Sequence record: OP889247.1
Length of the DNA: 64,000 nt
Reading direction: 5' to 3' (one strand)
The translations under genes were made by a program, and so were the position numbers. Positions 3,861 to 33,333 of the stretch are shown one piece after another. The notes under the pieces are model-generated. The model made no database searches. It saw only the letters and a list, made by a program, of their open reading frames with translations, and was not told the origin of the DNA. Every line of letters begins with the position of its first letter. Within the stretch, counting starts at the first letter, position 1.

Positions 3861-3948
3861 ATTAACCTTGCGGTAGTTTGTACCATGCTCCTATTCTCCT
3901 ACAAGGAGAATAGGAGTAAAGACTTTCATGTGATAAAAGGAAATTATT

Positions 3949-4581
3949 ATGAAAATTCAATCTATGCTGTTTGCTCTGTTTATGACTGTAGTTGGTTCTG
4001 ATGTAGTGGCGATGTCAGCTGATCCCGAACCGATTAACTACAACATCCGTCCTGCTGAAGCGGTAATCACCAACACCTATGTGAACAATCAGGGTAATCC
4101 GGTTTTGAGTATTGAGCTGAAGAAAGGTATTCAATCTCAAACTGTTTATTTTGTTTGTGCTAAAGGTAACAGTGATTACTCGGTGTTCTATGATTTTACT
4201 GATATCAATAACCAGGCAACTGATTACTCAACTGGTTTTGCTATTCAGTACTATCCTAAAGGACATGGTAACAAGGCTCGACTGGTTTATGACGATTGGG
4301 ATAACAACCTGATCCTGTCCGATCGTCGTAATGTTACTTTCACTCAAGCTATGGAACGTGCTGGTAAACTTAAAGGCGGTACCATCGTATTTGCTTTCTA
4401 CTCTACTGACAACTATGAGCAAGGTACGCCGACCGCTTACTCCTGGTCCATGCCGGTTGAAGACTTTGTTAAGAATGTAAACGGTGTTGTAAAGGGTGAA
4501 GAGTTTGATGGCGCTTGTGATCACGCTCTGGTTAAAGGTTACTCACCTAAAGTTCAGTACCAAATGCCGCGTATGCGTTAA
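3949..4581 (+). CDS. exported protein with signal peptide (paralog 2 of 3)
   Basis: N-terminal hydrophobic signal; exactly two Cys. Confidence 0.8.
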   Translation: MKIQSMLFALFMTVVGSDVVAMSADPEPINYNIRPAEAVITNTYVNNQGNPVLSIELKKGIQSQTVYFVCAKGNSDYSVFYDFTDINNQATDYSTGFAIQYYPKGHGNKARLVYDDWDNNLILSDRRNVTFTQAMERAGKLKGGTIVFAFYSTDNYEQGTPTAYSWSMPVEDFVKNVNGVVKGEEFDGACDHALVKGYSPKVQYQMPRMR

Positions 4582-5491: not shown

Positions 5492-6217
5492 ATGAACCAC
5501 GAAATTAGTTTGCTTGAAAAAGTTAATGATTACTATCTTAAGTTTAAGTTCTTGTTTCGCAACATCCCTATTAATCAAGACCTGTTGAAATTCTGTGTTG
5601 AGAGTATTTCACGCAACGATAAAGCTCATAATCTTGAGCATGTATTTGCTGTATGTAAACTTGCAGTAGATATTTGTGAACAAGAGAAGATGAGCGGTCG
5701 TGAAAAGGAACTAGTGATCTTAGGGGCGCTGTTTCACGATTTGGGTTGTTGTTATGAACGCTCTCAACATCACGTTATCGGGTACGGGCTAACCTACGAG
5801 TATCTGAATCGGTTCTGTGCTTTCGATTATACTTCTGAGGAAGTAATGATTGTGGCTAACGCGGTTTTAGAGCATCGTAGTTCCAATAAGAACAAGCCGA
5901 CTAACAAAGTTAGCGAAATAGTCAGTATTGCCGATTCTGGTCGTCCAAAGATCAAGTTATACATTCAAAGATGTATTCAATTCCGTGAACATCGCGGAGA
6001 CCTTGATCGACTATCAACACTGGAGTTTTTCGAAGAAGTAAAGGGACACTTAGTAGAAAAGTTCGGTCCTGATGGTTACCACTGGAAAAGCTACCCTGAC
6101 TTGGGCTTAACCTATTTTGACAAAGAGTGGAAAGAATTCAGTAGTTATCTCTGTAAGGAAAGAGAAGCTGAATTTGACTTGCTTGTAAAAGAGGTCTTCG
6201 ATTCACTCCGGGAGTAA
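5492..6217 (+). CDS. HD-domain metal-dependent phosphohydrolase
   Basis: Motifs AHNLEH, LFHDLG, EH and ADS. Confidence 0.85.
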   Translation: MNHEISLLEKVNDYYLKFKFLFRNIPINQDLLKFCVESISRNDKAHNLEHVFAVCKLAVDICEQEKMSGREKELVILGALFHDLGCCYERSQHHVIGYGLTYEYLNRFCAFDYTSEEVMIVANAVLEHRSSNKNKPTNKVSEIVSIADSGRPKIKLYIQRCIQFREHRGDLDRLSTLEFFEEVKGHLVEKFGPDGYHWKSYPDLGLTYFDKEWKEFSSYLCKEREAEFDLLVKEVFDSLRE

Positions 6218-7692: not shown

Positions 7693-9891
7693 TTATTGGG
7701 CGGTCAGACTGGTTTCGTTGTAAGCTTCCAGTACAGAGTTCATCATATAAACTCCTTTGGAGAACCACAGACGAGTAGTCGTGTACATGACAGATTTACC
7801 GTTAGGTTCATCTTCCCGGAAACCTGGATCAACTTCCCAGTTAACAATGACAGAACCAAACTTCTCACGGATATCTTTCTCAGCAGTATCTTTAACAAAG
7901 GCAATATAACCTTGTTGGCGATACTGAGTGTCACCGGAGATCTTGATCCAAGTGTCTTGAAGTACTTTCTCCACACAGACACATTTCCAAACGTTGGAAA
8001 GATCTTTCAGTACAGAGTCAGTGTTATCGTAGACGGTCGGGAGAGCCGGTCGGCAATACTGAGAAGTGTTCAAAGGAGTTACCGAGATAGCACCTTTGGT
8101 GAGGTTGTTAGCAGCCGGATCATCGTCTTCGAACTGAACCAGTGGATCATGAGCAACACGCAGTGTGCGGTTACCTTCGTGATCAGGCATTCGATCACCG
8201 TAGATCTTACCATCGTTACCGCCACCTGCGTAAGCAAATGCGTACATGGTATCGATATTCAAAGAGAAACGACCAAAGGTCGGTTCGTCAATGATCCGAC
8301 AATCCCACATGTTAATCGCTGCGCGACAAGCGTGGGATTGGAAGGTCTCGGATTCCGGATACATGACAATCTTAGAGTTTAAAGATTCCATTGTGGAATA
8401 CAGTTGCTCTTGAGATTTCTTCTTCAGATATTCAGTTGCGCACAGTACAACGATGATATCTTTACGAACACCAAGGAAATCGATCAGTGCTTCTTTAACC
8501 GCTTCATTATAACCAACGTCCCACATAAAGGAAGTACGGTTACGAATAACATCTTTGACATCCAAAGAACGGCGGTAAGAAACAAAGTAAGCTTCCAGCA
8601 GAGATTGGTTCATGTACCAATATTGCTTATGGCTTACAATAGCCGGGGAGTTGGTATTAGGAACCCAAGTGCCATCAACTTCAGTAATCCAGTCAGCAGG
8701 TGCGTCCGGGTATTTACCAGTTTTATCAGCATATGGGTTAATACCACCATTAGCTTGCAGGTAGCTATTCAGACCGACCCGAGTACCTTTGAGCTTGGAA
8801 GGAACATCCACCAAGCCACCAAAGACGATGTGGTGATAGTTCTTACCATAATGGTTAACCAAGCTCAGTGGGTTCATGATCGCGCCTTTGGGAAGGACAT
8901 CGGTCTTGATCACAGGAGGAGTTTGTTTACCATCGCCGTATTCAGCTGCGTACAATTTAGTACAAACATCGTTCAGATAGTTGGTATAAACATGTGCAGA
9001 TTCAAACGGTGCTGCTTTATCTTCTACTGGACGGTTTACTTGACGACCTGTGAAGCGATCCAGACCACCTTGTACTGAATAGCGAACGTTATTACCACCA
9101 ACGCTATTGAACAGAGTAATCATGGAATCGGGAGAACCGATAGTAGTAGTCGCCGGTACACGGATCCCGCTAGGAAGAAGCTCGCCGATGTTCATGGTGA
9201 ACGGATACACGCCGTAGTTGATTACAAAACGTGCAATCTCATTCCAGTCGGTACCGAAAGAGTGACCAATAGCTGCGTACATCGCGTTGTAACTGTCTCC
9301 GATGCCGGAGAGAAGTTCAAACAACGGATAGAACATACCTTTGGTTTCAGCAGGAACTGATTTACCAGCAGGTGCAGTAACTTCGAAACTCTTAACTTCG
9401 CCTACAGCGGTAGCTTGATCGACAAACATAGTTGCAGGGGAAACAAAGATACCTGGAACAGTAGGAGTGTCTTCATCTACTTTAGGATTACCAGCGATGT
9501 CAAGAACATAGTCATCACGGGTATCACGTTCGTAGTTAGGAACAGGAACACCTTCGAAGAGAACAACCCCGAGAATAGTACGCGCTACTTCGACGTTGTT
9601 GGTGAGACGCTTAAAGCTGAAAGAAGCTTGCGCTGCAGACCCAAGCTTTTGAATAGCCACCGCGATCGGGTTATAGAACGGACCATTAGGATCCATTACA
9701 TCACCGAACTTCTCTTTGAAGTCAGCGACCGCGACTGTATCGCGTTTAGTCGGACCCCGAGGGGTGACCATAGCGAAGTCAGGAAAGTGAGCAGGAGAGG
9801 CGAAAACGGGGATTGGATTAGTAAGATTTTCTTTGCTAACAATACCTTCGTTTACCACTTTTCCCGGAATCACTTTATTAAAAGTAGTCAT
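7693..9891 (-). CDS. tail sheath protein (phiKZ gp29-like)
   Basis: 732 aa; TPRGP and WDVGY motifs; highly-expressed codon bias; synteny. Confidence 0.85.
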   Translation of the reverse strand: MTTFNKVIPGKVVNEGIVSKENLTNPIPVFASPAHFPDFAMVTPRGPTKRDTVAVADFKEKFGDVMDPNGPFYNPIAVAIQKLGSAAQASFSFKRLTNNVEVARTILGVVLFEGVPVPNYERDTRDDYVLDIAGNPKVDEDTPTVPGIFVSPATMFVDQATAVGEVKSFEVTAPAGKSVPAETKGMFYPLFELLSGIGDSYNAMYAAIGHSFGTDWNEIARFVINYGVYPFTMNIGELLPSGIRVPATTTIGSPDSMITLFNSVGGNNVRYSVQGGLDRFTGRQVNRPVEDKAAPFESAHVYTNYLNDVCTKLYAAEYGDGKQTPPVIKTDVLPKGAIMNPLSLVNHYGKNYHHIVFGGLVDVPSKLKGTRVGLNSYLQANGGINPYADKTGKYPDAPADWITEVDGTWVPNTNSPAIVSHKQYWYMNQSLLEAYFVSYRRSLDVKDVIRNRTSFMWDVGYNEAVKEALIDFLGVRKDIIVVLCATEYLKKKSQEQLYSTMESLNSKIVMYPESETFQSHACRAAINMWDCRIIDEPTFGRFSLNIDTMYAFAYAGGGNDGKIYGDRMPDHEGNRTLRVAHDPLVQFEDDDPAANNLTKGAISVTPLNTSQYCRPALPTVYDNTDSVLKDLSNVWKCVCVEKVLQDTWIKISGDTQYRQQGYIAFVKDTAEKDIREKFGSVIVNWEVDPGFREDEPNGKSVMYTTTRLWFSKGVYMMNSVLEAYNETSLTAQ

Positions 9892-24039: not shown

Positions 24040-25515
24040 TTATTTATAATAGTCGCGCACTAATGTTCTAATTACAATGTACAACATCAATCCATTACGT
24101 AAACAAGCTACGCTATACTGGGTTTTAATACCAGTCATAGATGTGATTAACTTATCACCATTCTTTCTAAGCTTGTGAACCAATTCGTTAATTGACTTGT
24201 TACTGGTATATCCACCACGTAACTTATATACTACGTTACTCAAGTCATTATAACGAATAGAGTTCGAACTCAAGTACTCAAAAAGGTGGGTAATAACATC
24301 ATCTACAAACTCTCTGTATTTCTCACCCTTTGGATGATTGTACTGGGTAGGAAACTCTTTAACGACTAAAGCTAGTTTATCTTCAAACTGTTTCTGTGCT
24401 TTAGAGTCATCAATTGCTTTAGCGGCAAACCCCAGCAGTTCTTGTTTGTAGAAAGAATGTCCGTCAGTAATGATAGTATTGATGTAAGTACGAAAAGCGT
24501 TTACATTCTTCTGGATGTCTTTCAGGTCGATCTGACCGTCACTAATTACAAAACCTGATTCGGTTTCTACCAGGTTAACACTATCTTTTACTTCATAAAG
24601 CACTTTAGTGAAATCGTTAACAACACCTTTCAAACGAGATTCCATATCGTTTACCATATAGACAATTTTCTTATCATTGTCCATTTTGGTGAATGTGTCA
24701 TAGTGGATACCTGTTTTAGGATCTATAATGAATTCAGCACGTGCTTTAAACAGAGCATTCCAACTACCGTAACGTTTGATATCAAACTTCATTGACAGTT
24801 TGTTATAAGCGGTTTGAGCAACACTAGGTTTTACCAAATAAGCGAAATAGTGGTTCATGATAGATGTTAAAATACGATAGTGAAACAGAATGATCAAATT
24901 CACTAAAGCATCATCTTTCATGTTCTTAGGTAAGTTAGACTTGTGAACTTTATGCATCAAATAAACAATGGATAAGTTAAAGGCATCCGAAGATACTTTA
25001 AAGTCTTTATTAATCCATTTACATTTGATCAATTCATCCCGAAGTTTAACTTCATCAACATCAATGATGTCGGTAAAGAAAGCTACGCGATCAGCAGTTT
25101 TAAATACAATACGATGTGTACCGAGATACGGTGTACCGAAGAACTCAGCGTGATCGTTATCCTTGGTAGCGAAACCATAAACAAAACGTCTAAGGGTAGA
25201 AACCCATTTAGGTGTGATCTCTAAGTCTTCTACTAGTCCTTCAAAAACACCATATACGGAGTGATCAGTATTGTAGTTGTAATTGGGAGCCAATGCTTCT
25301 AAACCAGCAATACATTCGTTAATATCTTCAAAGCTCTCTAACCCTCCCAGTTCTCTCATAGAACGAACAGGAGTAAACATAGAGCTAAGATACTCTTCGC
25401 TTCCAGAAAGCTTACTAAGGACTTCCTGTAGCTCTAAAAAGCTATTATCGTAATCTGCTTCTTCTAAAGGTTCAGGATTAAATCTAGCTTGAACCTGATG
25501 ACTAAATTGATTCAT
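24040..25515 (-). CDS. conserved phiKZ-like hypothetical protein
   Basis: 491-aa ORF in an operon with tmk; GGAG RBS. Confidence 0.75.
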   Translation of the reverse strand: MNQFSHQVQARFNPEPLEEADYDNSFLELQEVLSKLSGSEEYLSSMFTPVRSMRELGGLESFEDINECIAGLEALAPNYNYNTDHSVYGVFEGLVEDLEITPKWVSTLRRFVYGFATKDNDHAEFFGTPYLGTHRIVFKTADRVAFFTDIIDVDEVKLRDELIKCKWINKDFKVSSDAFNLSIVYLMHKVHKSNLPKNMKDDALVNLIILFHYRILTSIMNHYFAYLVKPSVAQTAYNKLSMKFDIKRYGSWNALFKARAEFIIDPKTGIHYDTFTKMDNDKKIVYMVNDMESRLKGVVNDFTKVLYEVKDSVNLVETESGFVISDGQIDLKDIQKNVNAFRTYINTIITDGHSFYKQELLGFAAKAIDDSKAQKQFEDKLALVVKEFPTQYNHPKGEKYREFVDDVITHLFEYLSSNSIRYNDLSNVVYKLRGGYTSNKSINELVHKLRKNGDKLITSMTGIKTQYSVACLRNGLMLYIVIRTLVRDYYK

Positions 25516-25530
25516 GTTAATCCTTCTCCA

Positions 25531-26382
25531 TTAACGTTTTCTTGGCACCATTGATTTCAAGGTATCACTGACACCTTTTGGATCCGCGTAACTGAGGTAC
25601 TTCTTCATCTCTTCGTTAAAGAACTCTTTAAACTCTCTAGCTGAATCGGCGTAGCGTTCTACGTCATCTCGTACATCGTCCACAGAGACACCATAACGAG
25701 ATACAGCTTCTTGCATACCCCTACGACAGGTCTTATAGATATAAGCCTTTGTAGCTAATTCTACAAGCTCGTAGAACTTATCGTACATCTTAGGTGGGAT
25801 TACAGAGAAGTGTTCATCATAAGCTAGGATTACTTTAGCGATCATATTAAACATCGCTGCGCCAGCATCACGTATAATAAACGAGTTGTTACCGGTCATA
25901 GTAAAACTAGTAAATGAACGTTGTACATTACTGTCATCCAATCCAGCCATAAGACGATTCAGCGCATTACCAACTTGACCACCGCTGCCACAAGAACCAT
26001 TACCACTTGTCATGTTATAACCAGAAGCAATGGCGCGATTAAGATTACCAGGATAGACCTCGATAACCGAAATAATTTTTCTACCGCCAGTAAGGAAATC
26101 GGGTACATTGACTGCGATATGGCCAGACTGTAAGTTAGTTATTCTAGCAGAACTGAGGTCTAAAATCTCGGACGAACCTCCAGCAACGTTAACCAATGGT
26201 GCGACCATCTTCAAGATAACCTTCTCACGGATACCTTGCTCAATACTGTACTCGGTATTAACTGGTGACCATACAGACCCGTACGACTGGTTTGGATTAT
26301 CGAACGCTAACTTTAACAAATATTCAGGAATATCATTAACCCCTGATATTAAATTCTGTATGGAAAAGTCCACTGGGTTCAT
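25531..26382 (-). CDS. conserved phiKZ-like hypothetical protein, possibly virion-associated
   Basis: 283-aa ORF with RBS, first gene of the tmk operon. Confidence 0.75.
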   Translation of the reverse strand: MNPVDFSIQNLISGVNDIPEYLLKLAFDNPNQSYGSVWSPVNTEYSIEQGIREKVILKMVAPLVNVAGGSSEILDLSSARITNLQSGHIAVNVPDFLTGGRKIISVIEVYPGNLNRAIASGYNMTSGNGSCGSGGQVGNALNRLMAGLDDSNVQRSFTSFTMTGNNSFIIRDAGAAMFNMIAKVILAYDEHFSVIPPKMYDKFYELVELATKAYIYKTCRRGMQEAVSRYGVSVDDVRDDVERYADSAREFKEFFNEEMKKYLSYADPKGVSDTLKSMVPRKR

Positions 26383-26456
26383 GTTATCTTTCCTTCTAAT
26401 TAGGTTACTTTTAGGAAGTTACAAAAGATCAAAATCCCCGTAGAACAAACATAATC

Positions 26457-26486
26457 CTCTACCTTCCCAATTAAGGGAAGGTAGAG
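26457..26486. terminator. terminator-like hairpin bounding the ncRNA locus
   Basis: 12-bp stem CTCTACCTTCCC/GGGAAGGTAGAG. Confidence 0.7.
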
Positions 26487-26489
26487 TAA

Positions 26490-27335
26490 ACTTATCTGTA
26501 GTTAACATCAAAGTTAAATGTGTGAGAATACACATTCCATAAGGTTATCAATCTTCCATACCGAGTGTTTCGGTAAATGGTATTCAAGATAACCCTACAG
26601 GTCGTGCATTTTACTACACCACTTCTACCCGACGAAAGGTAGCATACAGTTTGCTCTGTTAGCCCTAGTCGTCTAGTAAAAAGATCTAGTCTTTATACTC
26701 TAGGTCACTAACGTCTGCGCTGTCTAAAACACCGACCATACCCGCAGGTACAGAGTGTCGGAACTCACTGTTAGGGCGTTCCTAAATAGCGAACAAGTCA
26801 GATCTAAATTGACCTGAGTCGTTCTGGACATCTTTGTTTCATGTCGCGGTCTTACTTCGACTATAACTTTCAGACTTATTTGTCGCTTAAACGACATTAC
26901 GTTTCGTCTGAAAGGTAACACCTCTTTGTTTTACGTCCTGAGGTTTCTATTTGGGACGATCCCGCCACGTAGGGATTTGGACGTCTCTTAACTGTTTGAA
27001 TGCACCGTTAGGATAAAGGAGACATGCTGACCGAGCATTATAACAACGGGAAACAATTAAGAGACTACTAGGACGATCACTACTTTTGAATTAACAGACA
27101 TTGGGTAAGTGAGGACTTTTGCAATTGGTTCTGTGAATTTCTAAGTAGTGACCGAAAGGTTGAACTATCAGTTGCCCGCTCCACTTAACGCAAATGGTTA
27201 ATTAGAAACCTGATAGTTCGTAAAGGGTTAGTTATCCATGAGAGTTTTAACTTTTCCGTTAGGCTTTGAGTTTCAACAATTTGTGATAGAGCATGAAGCA
27301 ACGGGAGGTCTAAAATCAAACATAAATAACTAAGA
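26490..27335 (-). ncRNA. candidate large ornate structured ncRNA (~850 nt)
   Basis: No credible ORF; many abutting 8-15 bp helices; most non-Watson-Crick pairs are G.U only on the minus strand; lies directly 3' of tRNA-Leu. Confidence 0.6.
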
Positions 27336-27337
27336 TG

Positions 27338-27421
27338 TGGTCTCCGAGGACGGGATCGAACCGTCACGCCATAGGCGAGGGATTTTAAATCCCTTGTGTC
27401 TACCAATTTCACCACTCGGAG
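27338..27421 (-). tRNA. tRNA-Leu(UAA)
   Basis: Full cloverleaf, long variable arm, AGGGA-UUUAAAA-UCCCU anticodon arm, encoded CCA. Confidence 0.95.
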
Positions 27422-27502
27422 TGGTAATAAGGATTATTGGATTCGAACCAATTCAATCTCTCTAATGGTGAGAGCGAGTTACCACCTAACTCTGCAATCC
27501 TT
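27422..27502 (-). tRNA. atypical or degenerate tRNA-like gene, CAU in the anticodon loop
   Basis: AAGGATT/AATCCTT acceptor; ATTGG-TTCGAAT-CCAAT T arm; CTCTC-ACCATTA-GAGAG arm lacking U33 and purine 37; extra bases before CCA. Confidence 0.6.
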
Positions 27503-27509
27503 AAAGGGG

Positions 27510-27643
27510 TTAGATCTTTCTCTTTGTCGTCATGAAAACCAGCAGGTCTCATATTGTTTATTTGTCTCGGTCACTTCAATTCGAGTCGAAGTGTAATTTG
27601 TCGGACAAATGTTAGATGGACAAGTTTCTTGAGAAAGATCTAA
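27510..27643 (-). ncRNA. structured inter-tRNA module closed by a 13-bp stem
   Basis: TTAGATCTTTCTC at 27510..27522 pairs perfectly with 27631..27643; internal hairpins. Confidence 0.45.
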
Positions 27644-27645
27644 AA

Positions 27646-27721
27646 TGGTGAGTCTTGTTGGGTATGATCCAACGACCGCCGAGTTATGAGCTCGGAGCTC
27701 TAACCGCTGAGCTAAAGACCC
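27646..27721 (-). tRNA. tRNA with CAU anticodon (Met or lysidine Ile2)
   Basis: 76-nt cloverleaf, CUCAUAA loop, CCA; unusual T loop AUCAUAC. Confidence 0.9.
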
Positions 27722-27728
27722 TGTAAAA

Positions 27729-27805
27729 TGGTGAGCTCGGTGCGACTTGAACGCACGACAGGAAGCTTAGAAGGCTTCTATTCTATCCAACTGAATTACG
27801 AGCTC
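27729..27805 (-). tRNA. tRNA-Arg(UCU)
   Basis: 77-nt canonical cloverleaf, CUUCUAA loop, CCA. Confidence 0.95.
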
Positions 27806-27811
27806 TGAATA

Positions 27812-27930
27812 GGTGGGTAGGAACAAATCCTACCCGACATGTATTACTTCGTTCTATCCCCAAGGTGCGCAAATGTCCGACCCGGTTTAGGGTTGAAATT
27901 ATCAAGTGGTAGATTCGGAAGTAATAATGT
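27812..27930 (-). ncRNA. structured module: long stem domain plus a 3' 7-bp hairpin
   Basis: TATTACTTC/GAAGTAATA long-range stem; GGGTAGG/CCTACCC hairpin. Confidence 0.4.
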
Positions 27931-27946
27931 TCTTTGAAATAGGGGC

Positions 27947-28027
27947 GAGATGCTAGACCGGACTTTATACCGGCATCTCCTGGTGGTAAGTTCACCAAGC
28001 GACTTCTGTTCAGTCTACTAACATCTC
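27947..28027 (-). ncRNA. non-canonical cloverleaf (tRNA-like) element
   Basis: 10-bp acceptor-like, 4-bp D-like, 7-bp anticodon-like and 5-bp T-like stems in tRNA order; no TTC, no CCA. Confidence 0.55.
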
Positions 28028-28105
28028 TAAGTCGAGTAACTAGATTAACTATTTACGTCTACTATACTTCAACATAATATAAACATTATGTTTATTAAAT
28101 AAAAA

Positions 28106-28136
28106 TACTCCTAGTTAGTTGGAGTAACTAGGAGTA
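28106..28136. terminator. terminator-like hairpin
   Basis: 11-bp stem TACTCCTAGTT/AACTAGGAGTA. Confidence 0.6.
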
Positions 28137-28745
28137 AAACAAAAACGCATGGAAGCATTTTTGAACGGCTCATTACTTTTTAATTAACTCTTAGTAAAAA
28201 CTAATTAAAAAGTAGGTGTTAACTTAACACCTACAAAAATAAAGCCTACAGGAAATAGAACAAAACAATGAAAAAGAAAACGCAAACCAACGCACGAAGA
28301 ACCCCGAGTTCTTCCTTAAGAACACTTTGATAAATATCCTTAAGGAAGAGAAGATGTAGGGATCATCTTCTCCGGGATAACAAGCGCCTAAACGTACTGA
28401 AAGCAAGGGATTACTTTCTTAATAGTAACTCATTGGAATTAACATTAAGAAAGCCACAGATACCTAGGAGGAGGACGTGCCTGTGACCTTTTATTACGGA
28501 GGTTTTGAAATGCAAGAAGTCAACTGTTAGCGGCAGCCTGAACTTCTTTAAGTTCACTTAATTGAAATAAACTTAAAGAAATAAGGTAACAAATAATATA
28601 ATTCATTACCTTAAACCAAACCGGTATAAATACATCATTGAGGATCCGATCATGAAAAACTTCCGCTGACAACAGGTTAAGGTTTTTCTTTCACATATAA
28701 TAAATACAACGTTGTAAATAAATAAAAAATATTTAAGTCCCATAA

Positions 28746-28770
28746 TTTTTGAGATAGATATTATTTTAAT
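28746..28770 (+). promoter_or_regulatory. early-type promoter variant opening the accessory region
   Basis: TTTTTGAGATA-GATATTAT. Confidence 0.55.
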
Positions 28771-28820
28771 GATAAACTAGTGAGGTTTAATTTTAACCTT
28801 GAGTGTAGAGAGGGTGGTTT

Positions 28821-29234
28821 ATGAGACTATTTGGTTGTGAGGAAAAAGTAAGTGGGAGAGATCGGCAAGTTTTCGTGTTTAAGGATTTTGTTATTAAACT
28901 TCCTAGAACTGAAAGCTGGTTGTCGTTCGTAAGAGGTCTGTGTTCTAACTTAAAGGAAATCGAAACGGTAAGGTCTTACGGTGGATTATTTCCTGAGCAA
29001 GTTATGGAAATCAAGTGGTCTGGTTTGTTTGGAATAATCTTGGTAGCTAAACGTTATCGGGAAGTGAAAGACACAACTGTACATCGTCGCAGATTCTTTT
29101 ATCACTTAAGGAGACTTCATGGGATGGAACTTTACAAGTGGAACTTTATCTGGGAAGATGATGTTAAAGTTTTCAACTACGGGTGGGATAAATACGGTCG
29201 GTTAGTGAAACTAGATTTAGGTATAAATTATTAA
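28821..29234 (+). CDS. minimal protein-kinase-like protein
   Basis: G..R.VF...FVIKLP (beta-3 Lys), helix-C Glu, D.K..N catalytic loop, KLDLG (DFG-like). Confidence 0.6.
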   Translation: MRLFGCEEKVSGRDRQVFVFKDFVIKLPRTESWLSFVRGLCSNLKEIETVRSYGGLFPEQVMEIKWSGLFGIILVAKRYREVKDTTVHRRRFFYHLRRLHGMELYKWNFIWEDDVKVFNYGWDKYGRLVKLDLGINY

Positions 29235-32153: not shown

Positions 32154-32882
32154 ATGCAAATCGATCGTACTGTCAATTTAACTTGTTATCCCGACCATGT
32201 AGATTTTGATGTTGATTATAACAAAACCATGTATGATTTATTTAAACTTGGTCTTGAGGATTACTTTGTTAAACTCTATAAAGACATTGGGCATGTCAAC
32301 AGGACAATTGACGAAGCTTTCAAAACTGCTCCTAAATCCATTACCTCAGTTACTATCCGTATTGGTGTAGTCTGCGGTAAAGACATCAAAATCAGTCGTG
32401 ATAGCAAACATCGTTTCTGGTTGTTTGTTGATGATAAGAGTTTCAGGGTTGGTGCAGTAGGTAATTATTTTGATAGAATCTCTTTAGACAGAATTAGAGA
32501 GAATTTGGGACTCCCCAATCAGTATGCTAAACAGTTTTTTACACAGGAGATTTCTCACAACGTTTTAAACTCTATTGAGATTCCAAAGCCATCCTTTCTT
32601 GATCTTTACGCTAGACGTCGTAAAGAGTTTACTTTTAATACTGGGGGATTCAAGGAAGGTAATTGGATTGTGGTAAAAGGGTTTATCAAATACAACATGT
32701 TTGGTAAAGATCATATCAGTATAGGCGTCTCATTCACTACAGGGTTAGTCAACCGTAGTTTGTTCCCTTGTTTACACACTAGACGTTCTATGGATATCAG
32801 TAATGAAGAATACAATTGGCATGAGAAGAGTAACATCTCTCACCTGGTAGCTGAAAGTATTGTAGAGTTGATTTTCAATTAA
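32154..32882 (+). CDS. hypothetical protein, tandem paralog family member 4
   Basis: IGVVC and PSFLDLYARRRKEFTFNTGG motifs. Confidence 0.8.
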   Translation: MQIDRTVNLTCYPDHVDFDVDYNKTMYDLFKLGLEDYFVKLYKDIGHVNRTIDEAFKTAPKSITSVTIRIGVVCGKDIKISRDSKHRFWLFVDDKSFRVGAVGNYFDRISLDRIRENLGLPNQYAKQFFTQEISHNVLNSIEIPKPSFLDLYARRRKEFTFNTGGFKEGNWIVVKGFIKYNMFGKDHISIGVSFTTGLVNRSLFPCLHTRRSMDISNEEYNWHEKSNISHLVAESIVELIFN

Positions 32883-33044
32883 ACTTGTTTAGGGAGTTAA
32901 AACTAACTCCCTAAACTTTAATTTTACATTTATATTTTTATGTAAAAAATATATGTTATGTAATTGGTTACTAAATTTGATTTTTGAACTTTACTTTTTC
33001 TTGGTTTTCCTATTCCTTTTAGATCGAATTTATTTCGATTTATA

Positions 33045-33120
33045 GGGGGTTTGGGGGTCCAGGTCAAAGTGGGGTCCAAAGGTCAAGTGCGGGTCCAATT
33101 ACCTAGTTCGGGTGAGTGGG
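33045..33120 (+). repeat. G-tract-rich island with ~2.5 imperfect 18-19 bp direct repeats
   Basis: GGGTCCA(AA)GGTCAA(A)GTG units at 33055, 33072 and 33091; six G3-G5 tracts in an AT-rich intergenic gap. Confidence 0.7.
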
Positions 33121-33333
33121 CGGCTGGAAGCCTATTATACTTAATTAGTGAAATGAGTATGATGGTAAGATAAGAATGAACGTAGTGAATACCTTATCCA
33201 TCAATACGAATGAACTGTAGCTAGGTAAGAAGAAAAGTAATACATTTAAAGATACTACAAACAACTTACTCTGGGTGAATAACCTAGGGTAAGGGAATAT
33301 GTTTGTTCATTTAAATAAACTACTAAAGAGGAT

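Follow-up and report, generated by a model that had tools for sequence, protein, structure and literature searches.

A stretch on the minus strand directly following the transfer RNA (tRNA) genes in the genome of Aeromonas phage AVP1 is best explained, with a probability that we put at roughly 70%, as a stand-alone, trans-acting structured non-coding RNA of ~880 nucleotides (nt), which would represent a family not described before, from the OBP/EL-related branch of Chimalliviridae. The window analyzed here is a 64,000-nt portion of record OP889247.1 (adding 124000 to a window coordinate gives the record coordinate, and 26400–27440 corresponds, at 100% identity, to record 150400–151440), and the RNA had originally been predicted in it, from the letters alone, as an 846-nt ornate RNA (26490–27335) fused to, and co-oriented with, the tRNA cluster of a nucleus-forming phage. 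The latter designation is supported by taxonomy, as Ferozepurvirus (the genus of AVP1) was transferred by the international virus taxonomy committee (ICTV) into Chimalliviridae, a family of nucleus-forming phages, in 2025 (PMC12451628). Proteins related to the adjacent 283-amino-acid one occur in Pseudomonas phage OBP and in further phiKZ-related jumbo phages (64–73% identity), as well as in EL (~47%).

The RNA starts one nucleotide past the encoded CCA of tRNA-Leu, and its first helix follows six nucleotides past the CCA, which leaves no space for a promoter of its own. An identical tRNA-Leu/RNA junction is found in phages ACP1, pAEv1810, and PS1 and in five metagenome contigs, and the whole RNA is kept end to end in nine Ferozepurvirus-like sequences. 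This one-nucleotide junction, along with the minus-strand orientation, supports the predicted fusion to the tRNA cluster, the layout being suggestive of co-transcription. The segment from tRNA-Leu to the terminator had also been described as free of open reading frames, and both the junction and a terminator-like hairpin were located with no conserved frame between them. Indeed, no stop-free frame of at least 90 codons occurs across 26441–28808, and in ACP1 and PS1 the sole recurrent stop-free stretch (68 codons, 26930–26727) is interrupted by frameshifts or stops; its variable columns are not enriched at third codon positions (14, 21, and 19 at positions 1, 2, and 3, respectively).

The minus strand of the 846-nt stretch folds with a minimum free energy of −246.4 kcal/mol vs. 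−203.2 ± 6.1 kcal/mol in shuffled sequences (z = −7.04), and the plus strand with −231.7 kcal/mol (z = −3.16); both strands are, thus, more stable than shuffles. Thirds of the RNA folded singly gave z = −3.67, −4.86, and −4.16 (200 shuffles each), every one of them being significant by itself. All nine helices listed in the original prediction were recovered where it had placed them (5–15 base pairs (bp) each, with 0–2 mismatches), and the four C·A mismatches that it had noticed on the plus strand, in four helices, do turn into G·U pairs on the minus strand. The long-range helix 26662–26670/27066–27074 can form as proposed but is the weakest of the set, being only 77.8% paired with a C·A in seven of nine sequences; it uses one among several CUAG palindromes.

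Relatives of the AVP1 region in the phage collection are ACP1 (91% identity), pAEv1810 (97%), and PS1/PS2 (74%), and five further ENA contigs (93–97%) came from the metagenome collection, which was scanned with a three-anchor pattern. In the resulting nine-sequence alignment (A2; four phage genomes and five contigs), 96.2% of the cells in the originally listed helices are paired, with 8 compensatory pairs vs. at most 1 in slid controls, so that comparative evidence supports the structure. The RNAalifold structure computed on the same alignment comprises 34 helices and 263 pairs; it is 97.6% paired, and compensatory change affects 17 of its pairs, vs. 2–6 in slid controls. Sequence variation within the clade is concentrated in peripheral hairpins, and the center of the molecule (~27067–26824; 245 nt) is 95.1% identical between AVP1 and PS1, as compared with 83.6% for the adjacent structural gene (64.8% at its third codon positions). 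PS1 and PS2 are without a 47-nt inner hairpin (27139–27089), and in pAEv1810 a ~1-kb HNH endonuclease gene stands in place of everything past the closing stem, up to which the RNA is intact; these two cases mark optional parts of the RNA. Free-standing HNH genes were observed at the RNA 3′ end in pAEv1810 (L003, 1892–2944) and between the tRNAs in PS1/PS2 (in PS1, L004, 4557–5060). PS1/PS2 also carry an unannotated tRNA-Leu(UAA) immediately 5′ of their RNA copy (L004, ~3870–3955).

Outside the genus, synteny of the locus is kept in OBP, N1M2, Yubaba, Kc263, AH04, SXP01, Survivor, pEt-SU, and four IMG/VR jumbo-phage contigs (among these, L007 represents the OBP genome as included in IMG/VR). 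The tRNAs come first, often accompanied by a glutaredoxin or thioredoxin gene, and 0.8–1.2 kb of unannotated sequence separates them from a pair of virion structural genes, after which come thymidylate kinase and terminase. A search of the OBP-like loci by nhmmer with the Ferozepurvirus alignment returned no match. A shared 3′ domain of ~260 nt was first spotted by eye via a loop motif and then confirmed by a mixed-clade profile, which recovers the 3′-domain loci at E = 1e-67 to 1e-129. This domain occupies the syntenic place in OBP, N1M2, Yubaba, Kc263, AH04, and the four IMG/VR contigs. Most syntenic loci contain a hairpin with the 13-nt loop GCCYUAACNGUGA, on a stem whose sequence is wholly different between genera, and 3′ of it come the conserved blocks ACAGCG and CAAACNGUCYGC, a hairpin, GAAGUKGU, another hairpin, GACAGCC, and a long closing stem. 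AVP1 shares the features of the proposed family, namely the UAACNGU loop pseudoknot, hairpin P-d, GAAGUKGU, the subsequent hairpin, (GA)CAGCC, and the long closing stem.

Covariation across genera was assessed in an alignment of 12 sequences (A3; AVP1 26785–26527 and 11 others). Its 37 pairs are 93.2% paired vs. 37–52% in slid controls, 24 of them are compensatory (4–9 in slid controls), and the covariation score is 0.64 vs. ~0.1. The proposed pseudoknot between the loop and the CAAACN′GU block (ACNGU:ACN′GU) is paired in 12 of 12 sequences, its center pair being U-A in five, C-G in four, and A-U in three; an alternative RNAalifold helix (ACN′G/UKGU) competes with it for the same bases. A reduced version of the domain was recognized by eye in Chaoshanvirus, where the CF8 loop UAACUGU is matched by AAACAGU and the AerS_266 loop UAACCGUG by ACGGU. 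A regular-expression check of this pseudoknot matched CF8 only and not AerS_266; as read by eye, U-A in CF8 vs. C-G in AerS_266 would be a compensatory change inside one genus. The 3′ domain is missing from SXP01, Survivor, and pEt-SU, and neither the profile nor regular expressions found anything of it in D6, EL, Aphrodite1, or phiKp_32.

Every OBP-like sequence with the 3′ domain has, directly 5′ of it and inside the ~1-kb unannotated RNA, a hammerhead-like core. Its elements follow in the order CUGA(N)GA, GUC...GAC, GAAA, a long hairpin (starting with ACGG and ending with CCGU), C, and 3–4 bases complementary to those preceding CUGA. Stem III is followed by GUC and then by the putative cleavage site; in OBP, GUC precedes AUGUCUAG. 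Among 12 jumbo-phage copies the only core position to vary is N7, which is U, C, or A. Covariation is seen in stem I (CAU/AUG, UAU/AUA, CAG/CUG, CACC/GGUG) and in a stabilizing pseudoknot helix between the 5′ flank of stem I and the loop of stem II (CCCG/CGGG, GUCG/CGAC, AUCG/CGAU); altogether, 98.9% of the cells in these 15 pairs are paired, and compensatory change affects 6 pairs. A pattern scan with this core also returned canonical phage hammerheads of identical layout. The likeness to a hammerhead of type I topology (Rfam clan CL00010) lies in CUGANGA, GAAA, and GUC with the cleavage site, arranged on three stems, whereas stem I is of only 3–4 bp, stem II is of 3 bp and lengthened by the pseudoknot to the 5′ flank, and the motif is embedded in a ~1-kb structured RNA. 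By sequence and covariation, these relatives display the hammerhead catalytic core (C3-U4-G5-A6-N7-G8-A9, G12-A13-A14, and an H17 cleavage site at a three-way junction). In SXP01, Survivor, and pEt-SU, a terminator lies at most ~25 nt past the ribozyme-like core. We found no description of a hammerhead-like core of OBP-like Chimalliviridae in the literature searched.

AVP1 itself is without this motif, as CUGANGA is absent from both strands of 26300–28900 in the window, and the segment aligned to CUGANGA of the relatives reads CUGAAAG. The AVP1 segment that aligns to the core may be a remodeled remnant of it. A circularly permuted hammerhead composed of AVP1 GACGAAAC and CUGAAAG was considered and rejected, having neither stem I nor G8/A9.

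The 5′ parts of these RNAs follow lineage. The AVP1 5′ module (~550 nt) is Ferozepurvirus-specific, and the OBP-type 5′ domain (~650 nt) is well conserved among its carriers. A search by nhmmer with the latter (--max, E ≤ 100) detected no similarity in the AVP1 5′ domain, CF8, AerS_266, D6, EL, or Aphrodite1, nor elsewhere in the window, and we accordingly treat the 5′ domains of the two types as unrelated. Thus, the RNA family is modular, its 5′ part being specific to the lineage and its 3′ part shared. Among the genomes and collections scanned, the AVP1-type RNA is confined to Ferozepurvirus and close metagenomic relatives, and the 3′ domain to this branch of Chimalliviridae. None was detected on scanning 185,579 genomes of bacteria and archaea, and when IMG/VR was scanned for exact patterns of two motifs from the AVP1 core, the only match was a chance one in an integrase coding sequence (CDS; L006). 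A looser 3′-core pattern returned eight extra IMG/VR loci, all discarded as chance matches with no profile similarity. The occurrence of the 3′ domain behind a hammerhead-like core, fused without such a core, or cut down to its pseudoknot core constitutes a natural experiment, by which evolution has mapped the domain boundaries and the essential core.

With respect to mechanism, the layout suggests that the RNA would be transcribed as the last member of a tRNA-Arg/tRNA-Met/tRNA-Leu unit, that its 5′ end would be freed through 3′ processing of tRNA-Leu, and that its 3′ end would be set by a terminator hairpin of the intrinsic type. Judging by the relatives, the 3′ domain may be the functional unit, able to exist as a separate RNA after self-cleavage. 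In OBP-like phages, self-cleavage, if the core is active, would part a different 5′ module from the 3′ domain; in AVP1, which no longer has the catalytic core, the two modules would most likely remain connected. By analogy with what has been proposed for GOLLD and ROOL, the RNA would act in trans as a folded scaffold during infection and would be neither a leader nor what is left of a coding sequence.

A number of points weigh against this interpretation. The proposed ends of the transcript are based on the tRNA junction and on a hairpin with a weak U-tract (GAUUAUGUUUG). A near-invariant core cannot reveal covariation, and its fold accordingly rests on thermodynamic prediction. As PS1/PS2 are the sole diverged members of the clade, much of the covariation there contrasts one lineage with the rest, and structures tested on the same alignments from which they were predicted have an advantage over slid controls. 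The Rfam model Hammerhead_3 scores only 16.3 bits on an OBP-type locus (E = 4.5, below the gathering score of 48.5), so that the hammerhead-like call rests on sequence and covariation and not on a curated match. A search for palindromic or covarying kissing loops, made with RNA-only homo-oligomeric cages such as those of GOLLD and ROOL in mind, found nothing robust, and a candidate signature of this kind (a CUAG loop in AVP1 corresponding to a GGCC loop in PS1) was rejected because the PS1 GGCC sits in a stem. Finally, virion structural genes follow immediately downstream of the RNA on the same strand, which leaves room for a role in cis.

This last point is the starting point of the main rival to the trans-acting reading, namely that the late operon downstream, which encodes virion structural proteins (25531–26382 and 24040–25515), has the entire RNA, or failing that the 3′ domain, as its cis-acting leader, and that this leader would control terminator read-through, mRNA stability, or mRNA export/translation. 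We regard such a leader as improbable, albeit as the alternative deserving the most attention. The same-strand position immediately 5′ of the structural genes holds in every genome examined, and the 3′ domain forms a junction whose loop and joining nucleotides are invariant, like those of riboswitch aptamers, with the terminator hairpin coming next. However, the closing stem and the terminator are separated by 25–70 non-conserved A-rich nucleotides with no alternative pairing evident by eye, and in pAEv1810 the ~1-kb HNH gene lies between the RNA and the structural gene. The arrangement in SXP01, Survivor, and pEt-SU (core, terminator, gene), in which cleavage would generate a read-through mRNA with a 5′-OH and a hairpin cap, speaks for a leader, and yet the 3′ domain is dispensable in these three relatives, which keep the same downstream genes. 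The terminator, too, bears on this question. The hairpin CCCUACC..GGUAGGG with UUUAUGUU (26457–26486 with 26440–26456) also ends other genes in related genomes, e.g., thymidylate kinase, and the presence of the terminator motif with UUUAUG at unrelated gene ends suggests an ordinary terminator-plus-promoter unit. UAUG after the hairpin may be part of a promoter for the phage's own RNA polymerase, an idea suggested by phiKZ late promoters.

As to class, the original prediction had left a choice between a divergent member of GOLLD or ROOL and a new class. At gathering score, 4227 covariance models of Rfam 15 identified only tRNAs in the entire 64-kb window, and with permissive filters (E ≤ 10) no GOLLD, ROOL, OLE, RNase P, transfer-messenger RNA, or ribozyme match was obtained on either strand of 26300–27900. 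The best non-tRNA match in the region was Intron_gpI on the plus strand (26399–26712, 11.6 bits, E = 8.1), which does not rise above noise and concerns the wrong strand; the recommended search of both strands, including introns, has thus produced no family match beyond noise. A likeness to motifs of the RNase P S-domain (ACAGAGAGCAAAC, GAAAGGGUGCGGUAAG) was dropped, there being no RNase P model at E ≤ 10. The 16 related loci likewise gave tRNAs only at gathering score, and an OBP-type locus gave no GOLLD or ROOL at E ≤ 10. By the one operational test available, a covariance-model match, the RNA is a member of neither family, and the first of the two options is not supported. The second stands: this is a new class of large structured phage RNA, akin in kind to GOLLD and ROOL.

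The resemblance to GOLLD (RF01998) consists of size (~800 nt vs. 881 nt here), phage origin, proximity to tRNA genes (which in GOLLD can even lie in the linker between the two parts), and a variable 5′ plus a conserved 3′ region, but size, tRNA adjacency, and 5′/3′ layout describe GOLLD and do not define it. The conserved motifs are different, there is no covariance-model match, and the relatives of the AVP1 RNA have a hammerhead-like core between the two regions; the hosts also differ, GOLLD being known from Lactobacillales and from lake and marine phages, as opposed to Chimalliviridae of Gammaproteobacteria. ROOL (RF03087) is similarly a large, ornate, abundant, non-coding RNA of phages and prophages near tRNA islands, with no known protein partner, but it is shorter, has not been described with variable 5′ and conserved 3′ parts, and shows no covariance-model match. 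That the AVP1 RNA is nonetheless a GOLLD or ROOL so divergent as to be beyond the reach of Rfam models seems very unlikely to us. A phage-encoded RNA of ~850 nt next to tRNA genes would fit, but the motifs GCCYUAACNGUGA, CAAACNGUCYGC, GAAGUKGU, and GACAGCC are recognized by no Rfam model, and the confinement of the family to one branch of Chimalliviridae runs contrary to such membership, as do the negative searches above. Literature on Chimalliviridae non-coding RNA, jumbo-phage hammerheads, and GOLLD/ROOL contained no description of the AVP1 RNA that we could find, nor, for Chimalliviridae, of a structured RNA of comparable size. To our knowledge, very few RNA classes above 500 nt with extensive covariation exist. 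GOLLD, ROOL, and OLE have each, once studied, revealed unexpected RNA architecture.

There is only a slim chance that the stretch is a functionless, decaying remnant of a gene, self-splicing intron, or other mobile element. HNH homing endonuclease genes do occur nearby in pAEv1810 and PS1/PS2, the weak Intron_gpI match touches the region, and the hammerhead-like core was apparently lost in the AVP1 lineage. Nevertheless, the RNA core is better conserved than neighboring protein genes, compensatory substitutions uphold helices within and between genera, and there is no coding signal, which makes a decayed coding or intron remnant, envisaged at the outset as a possible undoing of the prediction, very improbable.

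The functional strand is indicated to be minus by the z-scores, the counts of G·U vs. A·C cells in the minus-strand reading (244:17 in the predicted structure, 31:15 in the strand-neutral helices of the original prediction, and 68:10 in the cross-genus domain), the one-nucleotide CCA junction, the 3′ terminator, and the orientation of the relatives' hammerhead-like cores. This agrees with the predicted co-orientation with the tRNAs. A GAAA-looped hairpin (27151–27160) had been taken to favor the plus strand, but it is not conserved (CCAUUCGAUC in seven of the eight other sequences and CCUUUCGAUC in pAEv1810) and provides no evidence for that strand. A plus-strand transcript antisense to the tRNA unit, for which its own better-than-shuffled fold and this single AVP1 tetraloop might be invoked, can practically be dismissed, given that minus-strand G·U pairs would be A·C mismatches on the plus strand and that the terminator, the tRNAs, and the relatives' cores all lie on the minus strand.

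Table 1. Features of the AVP1 RNA and its relatives (window coordinates unless a contig is named)
Feature	Position	Strand	Basis or content
Whole RNA, ~881 nt	26457..27337	minus	base after tRNA-Leu encoded CCA to end of terminator hairpin
Peripheral 5′ region, three long hairpin domains (27332–27229, 27219–27162, 27154–27074)	27075..27332	minus	variable sequence, compensatory changes
Near-invariant core of lineage-specific 5′ domain	26786..27074	minus	conservation, predicted fold
Core helix	27065–27051/26997–26983	minus	
Core helices, pseudoknotted with each other	26984–26979/26938–26933 and 26944–26940/26924–26920	minus	
Core helix	26914–26906/26875–26867	minus	
Core hairpins	26861–26849, 26845–26827, 26824–26791	minus	
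Segment aligned to relatives' hammerhead-like core	26791..26875	minus	GUCUGAAAG-UUAUA-GUC..GAC-CGC-GACAUGAAAC, then long hairpin; no GUC cleavage triplet
3′ domain common to OBP-like and, reduced, Chaoshanvirus jumbo phages	26527..26785	minus	profile, covariation, fold z
Hairpin P-a, 5-bp stem, 13-nt loop GCCYUAACNGUGA at 26777–26765	26760..26782	minus	stem covaries fully across genera
ACUGU within CAAACUGUAUGC, proposed pseudoknot partner of loop ACAGU (26771–26767)	26646..26650	minus	covariation
Hairpin P-d (26641–26626) and GAAGUKGU (26625–26618)	26618..26641	minus	P-d: 5/5 pairs compensatory across genera
Long closing stem P-f (26610–26588 with 26549–26527)	26527..26610	minus	includes the originally predicted 10-bp helix
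Terminator-like hairpin	26486..26457	minus	12 pairs, 7 G-C; CUCUACCUUCCC-UUAAUU-GGGAAGGUAGAG, then GAUUAUGUUUG
tRNA-Leu(UAA) with encoded CCA, abuts RNA	27338–27421	minus	ARAGORN, Rfam
tRNA-Met	27646–27721	minus	ARAGORN, Rfam
tRNA-Arg	27729–27805	minus	ARAGORN, Rfam
Hammerhead-like core, OBP	L007 5577–5712		
Further copies of hammerhead-like core	L008 4965, L009 5041, L010 5511, L011 2503, L013 2823, L014 2514, L015 2549, L017 2827, L018 2505, L021 2831, L027 2297		
Recurrences of terminator hairpin with UUUAUGUU	L007 ~8950–9000, L015 ~5925–5985, L017 ~5910–5975, L021 ~5940–5990		

The surroundings of the RNA show further signs of structure. Upstream of the tRNAs, 27806–28820 contains no open reading frame and has a mean column identity of 96% among AVP1, ACP1, and PS1, above that of the flanking protein genes; for the fold of its part 28236–28820, z is −5.99 (minus strand) vs. 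−2.43 (plus strand), and three terminator-like hairpins occupy 28234–28106. This region gave weak profile matches in CF8 and OBP and no Rfam match, and it is probably another structured RNA plus a leader of the tRNA operon. Between tRNA-Met and tRNA-Leu, a tRNA-like remnant (27423–27505, minus strand) displays a stem of 7 bp resembling an acceptor, a T arm of canonical form (GGUUCGAAUCC), and, as a counterpart of the anticodon loop, ACCAUUA (CAU with C33), and is called by neither ARAGORN nor the Rfam tRNA model. Also between tRNAs lies a ~130-nt element (27506–27645) closed by the inverted repeat GATCTTTCTC...GAGAAAGATC, which is present upstream of the PS1/PS2 tRNA-Leu as well. At another place in the window, 32880–33318, 439 nt are without a stop-free frame of at least 90 codons on either strand.

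The 2.4-kb island 26441–28808 as a whole, with the tRNAs, the tRNA-like remnant, and the inverted-repeat element, looks like an RNA locus. More speculatively, and with odds that we consider low, it could be a dedicated one of nucleus-forming phages, composed of an ultra-conserved upstream RNA, the tRNAs, and the two-module RNA, in which the pseudoknotted 3′ domain is a functional unit, is hammerhead-released or scaffold-tethered depending on lineage, and assembles into an RNA-only or RNA-protein particle. The nucleus built by Chimalliviridae has a protein wall, across which these phages have to transport RNA; if the idea were true, the particle would have as its target either the phage tRNAs or the passage of RNA between phage nucleus and cytoplasm.

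A practical implication of this analysis is a correction of annotation, as several CDSs labeled “hypothetical protein” actually sit on structured RNAs. The GenBank CDS AVP1_0151 (38 amino acids, 26419–26535) overlaps the terminator, is unannotated in ACP1 and PS1, and is probably spurious. Two more such CDSs were noticed on related structured RNAs, N1M2_252 (L011, 1860–2372) and Kc263 QYN80068 (L015, 2527–2718), and all three are probably mis-annotations; one of them overlaps tRNA-Met.

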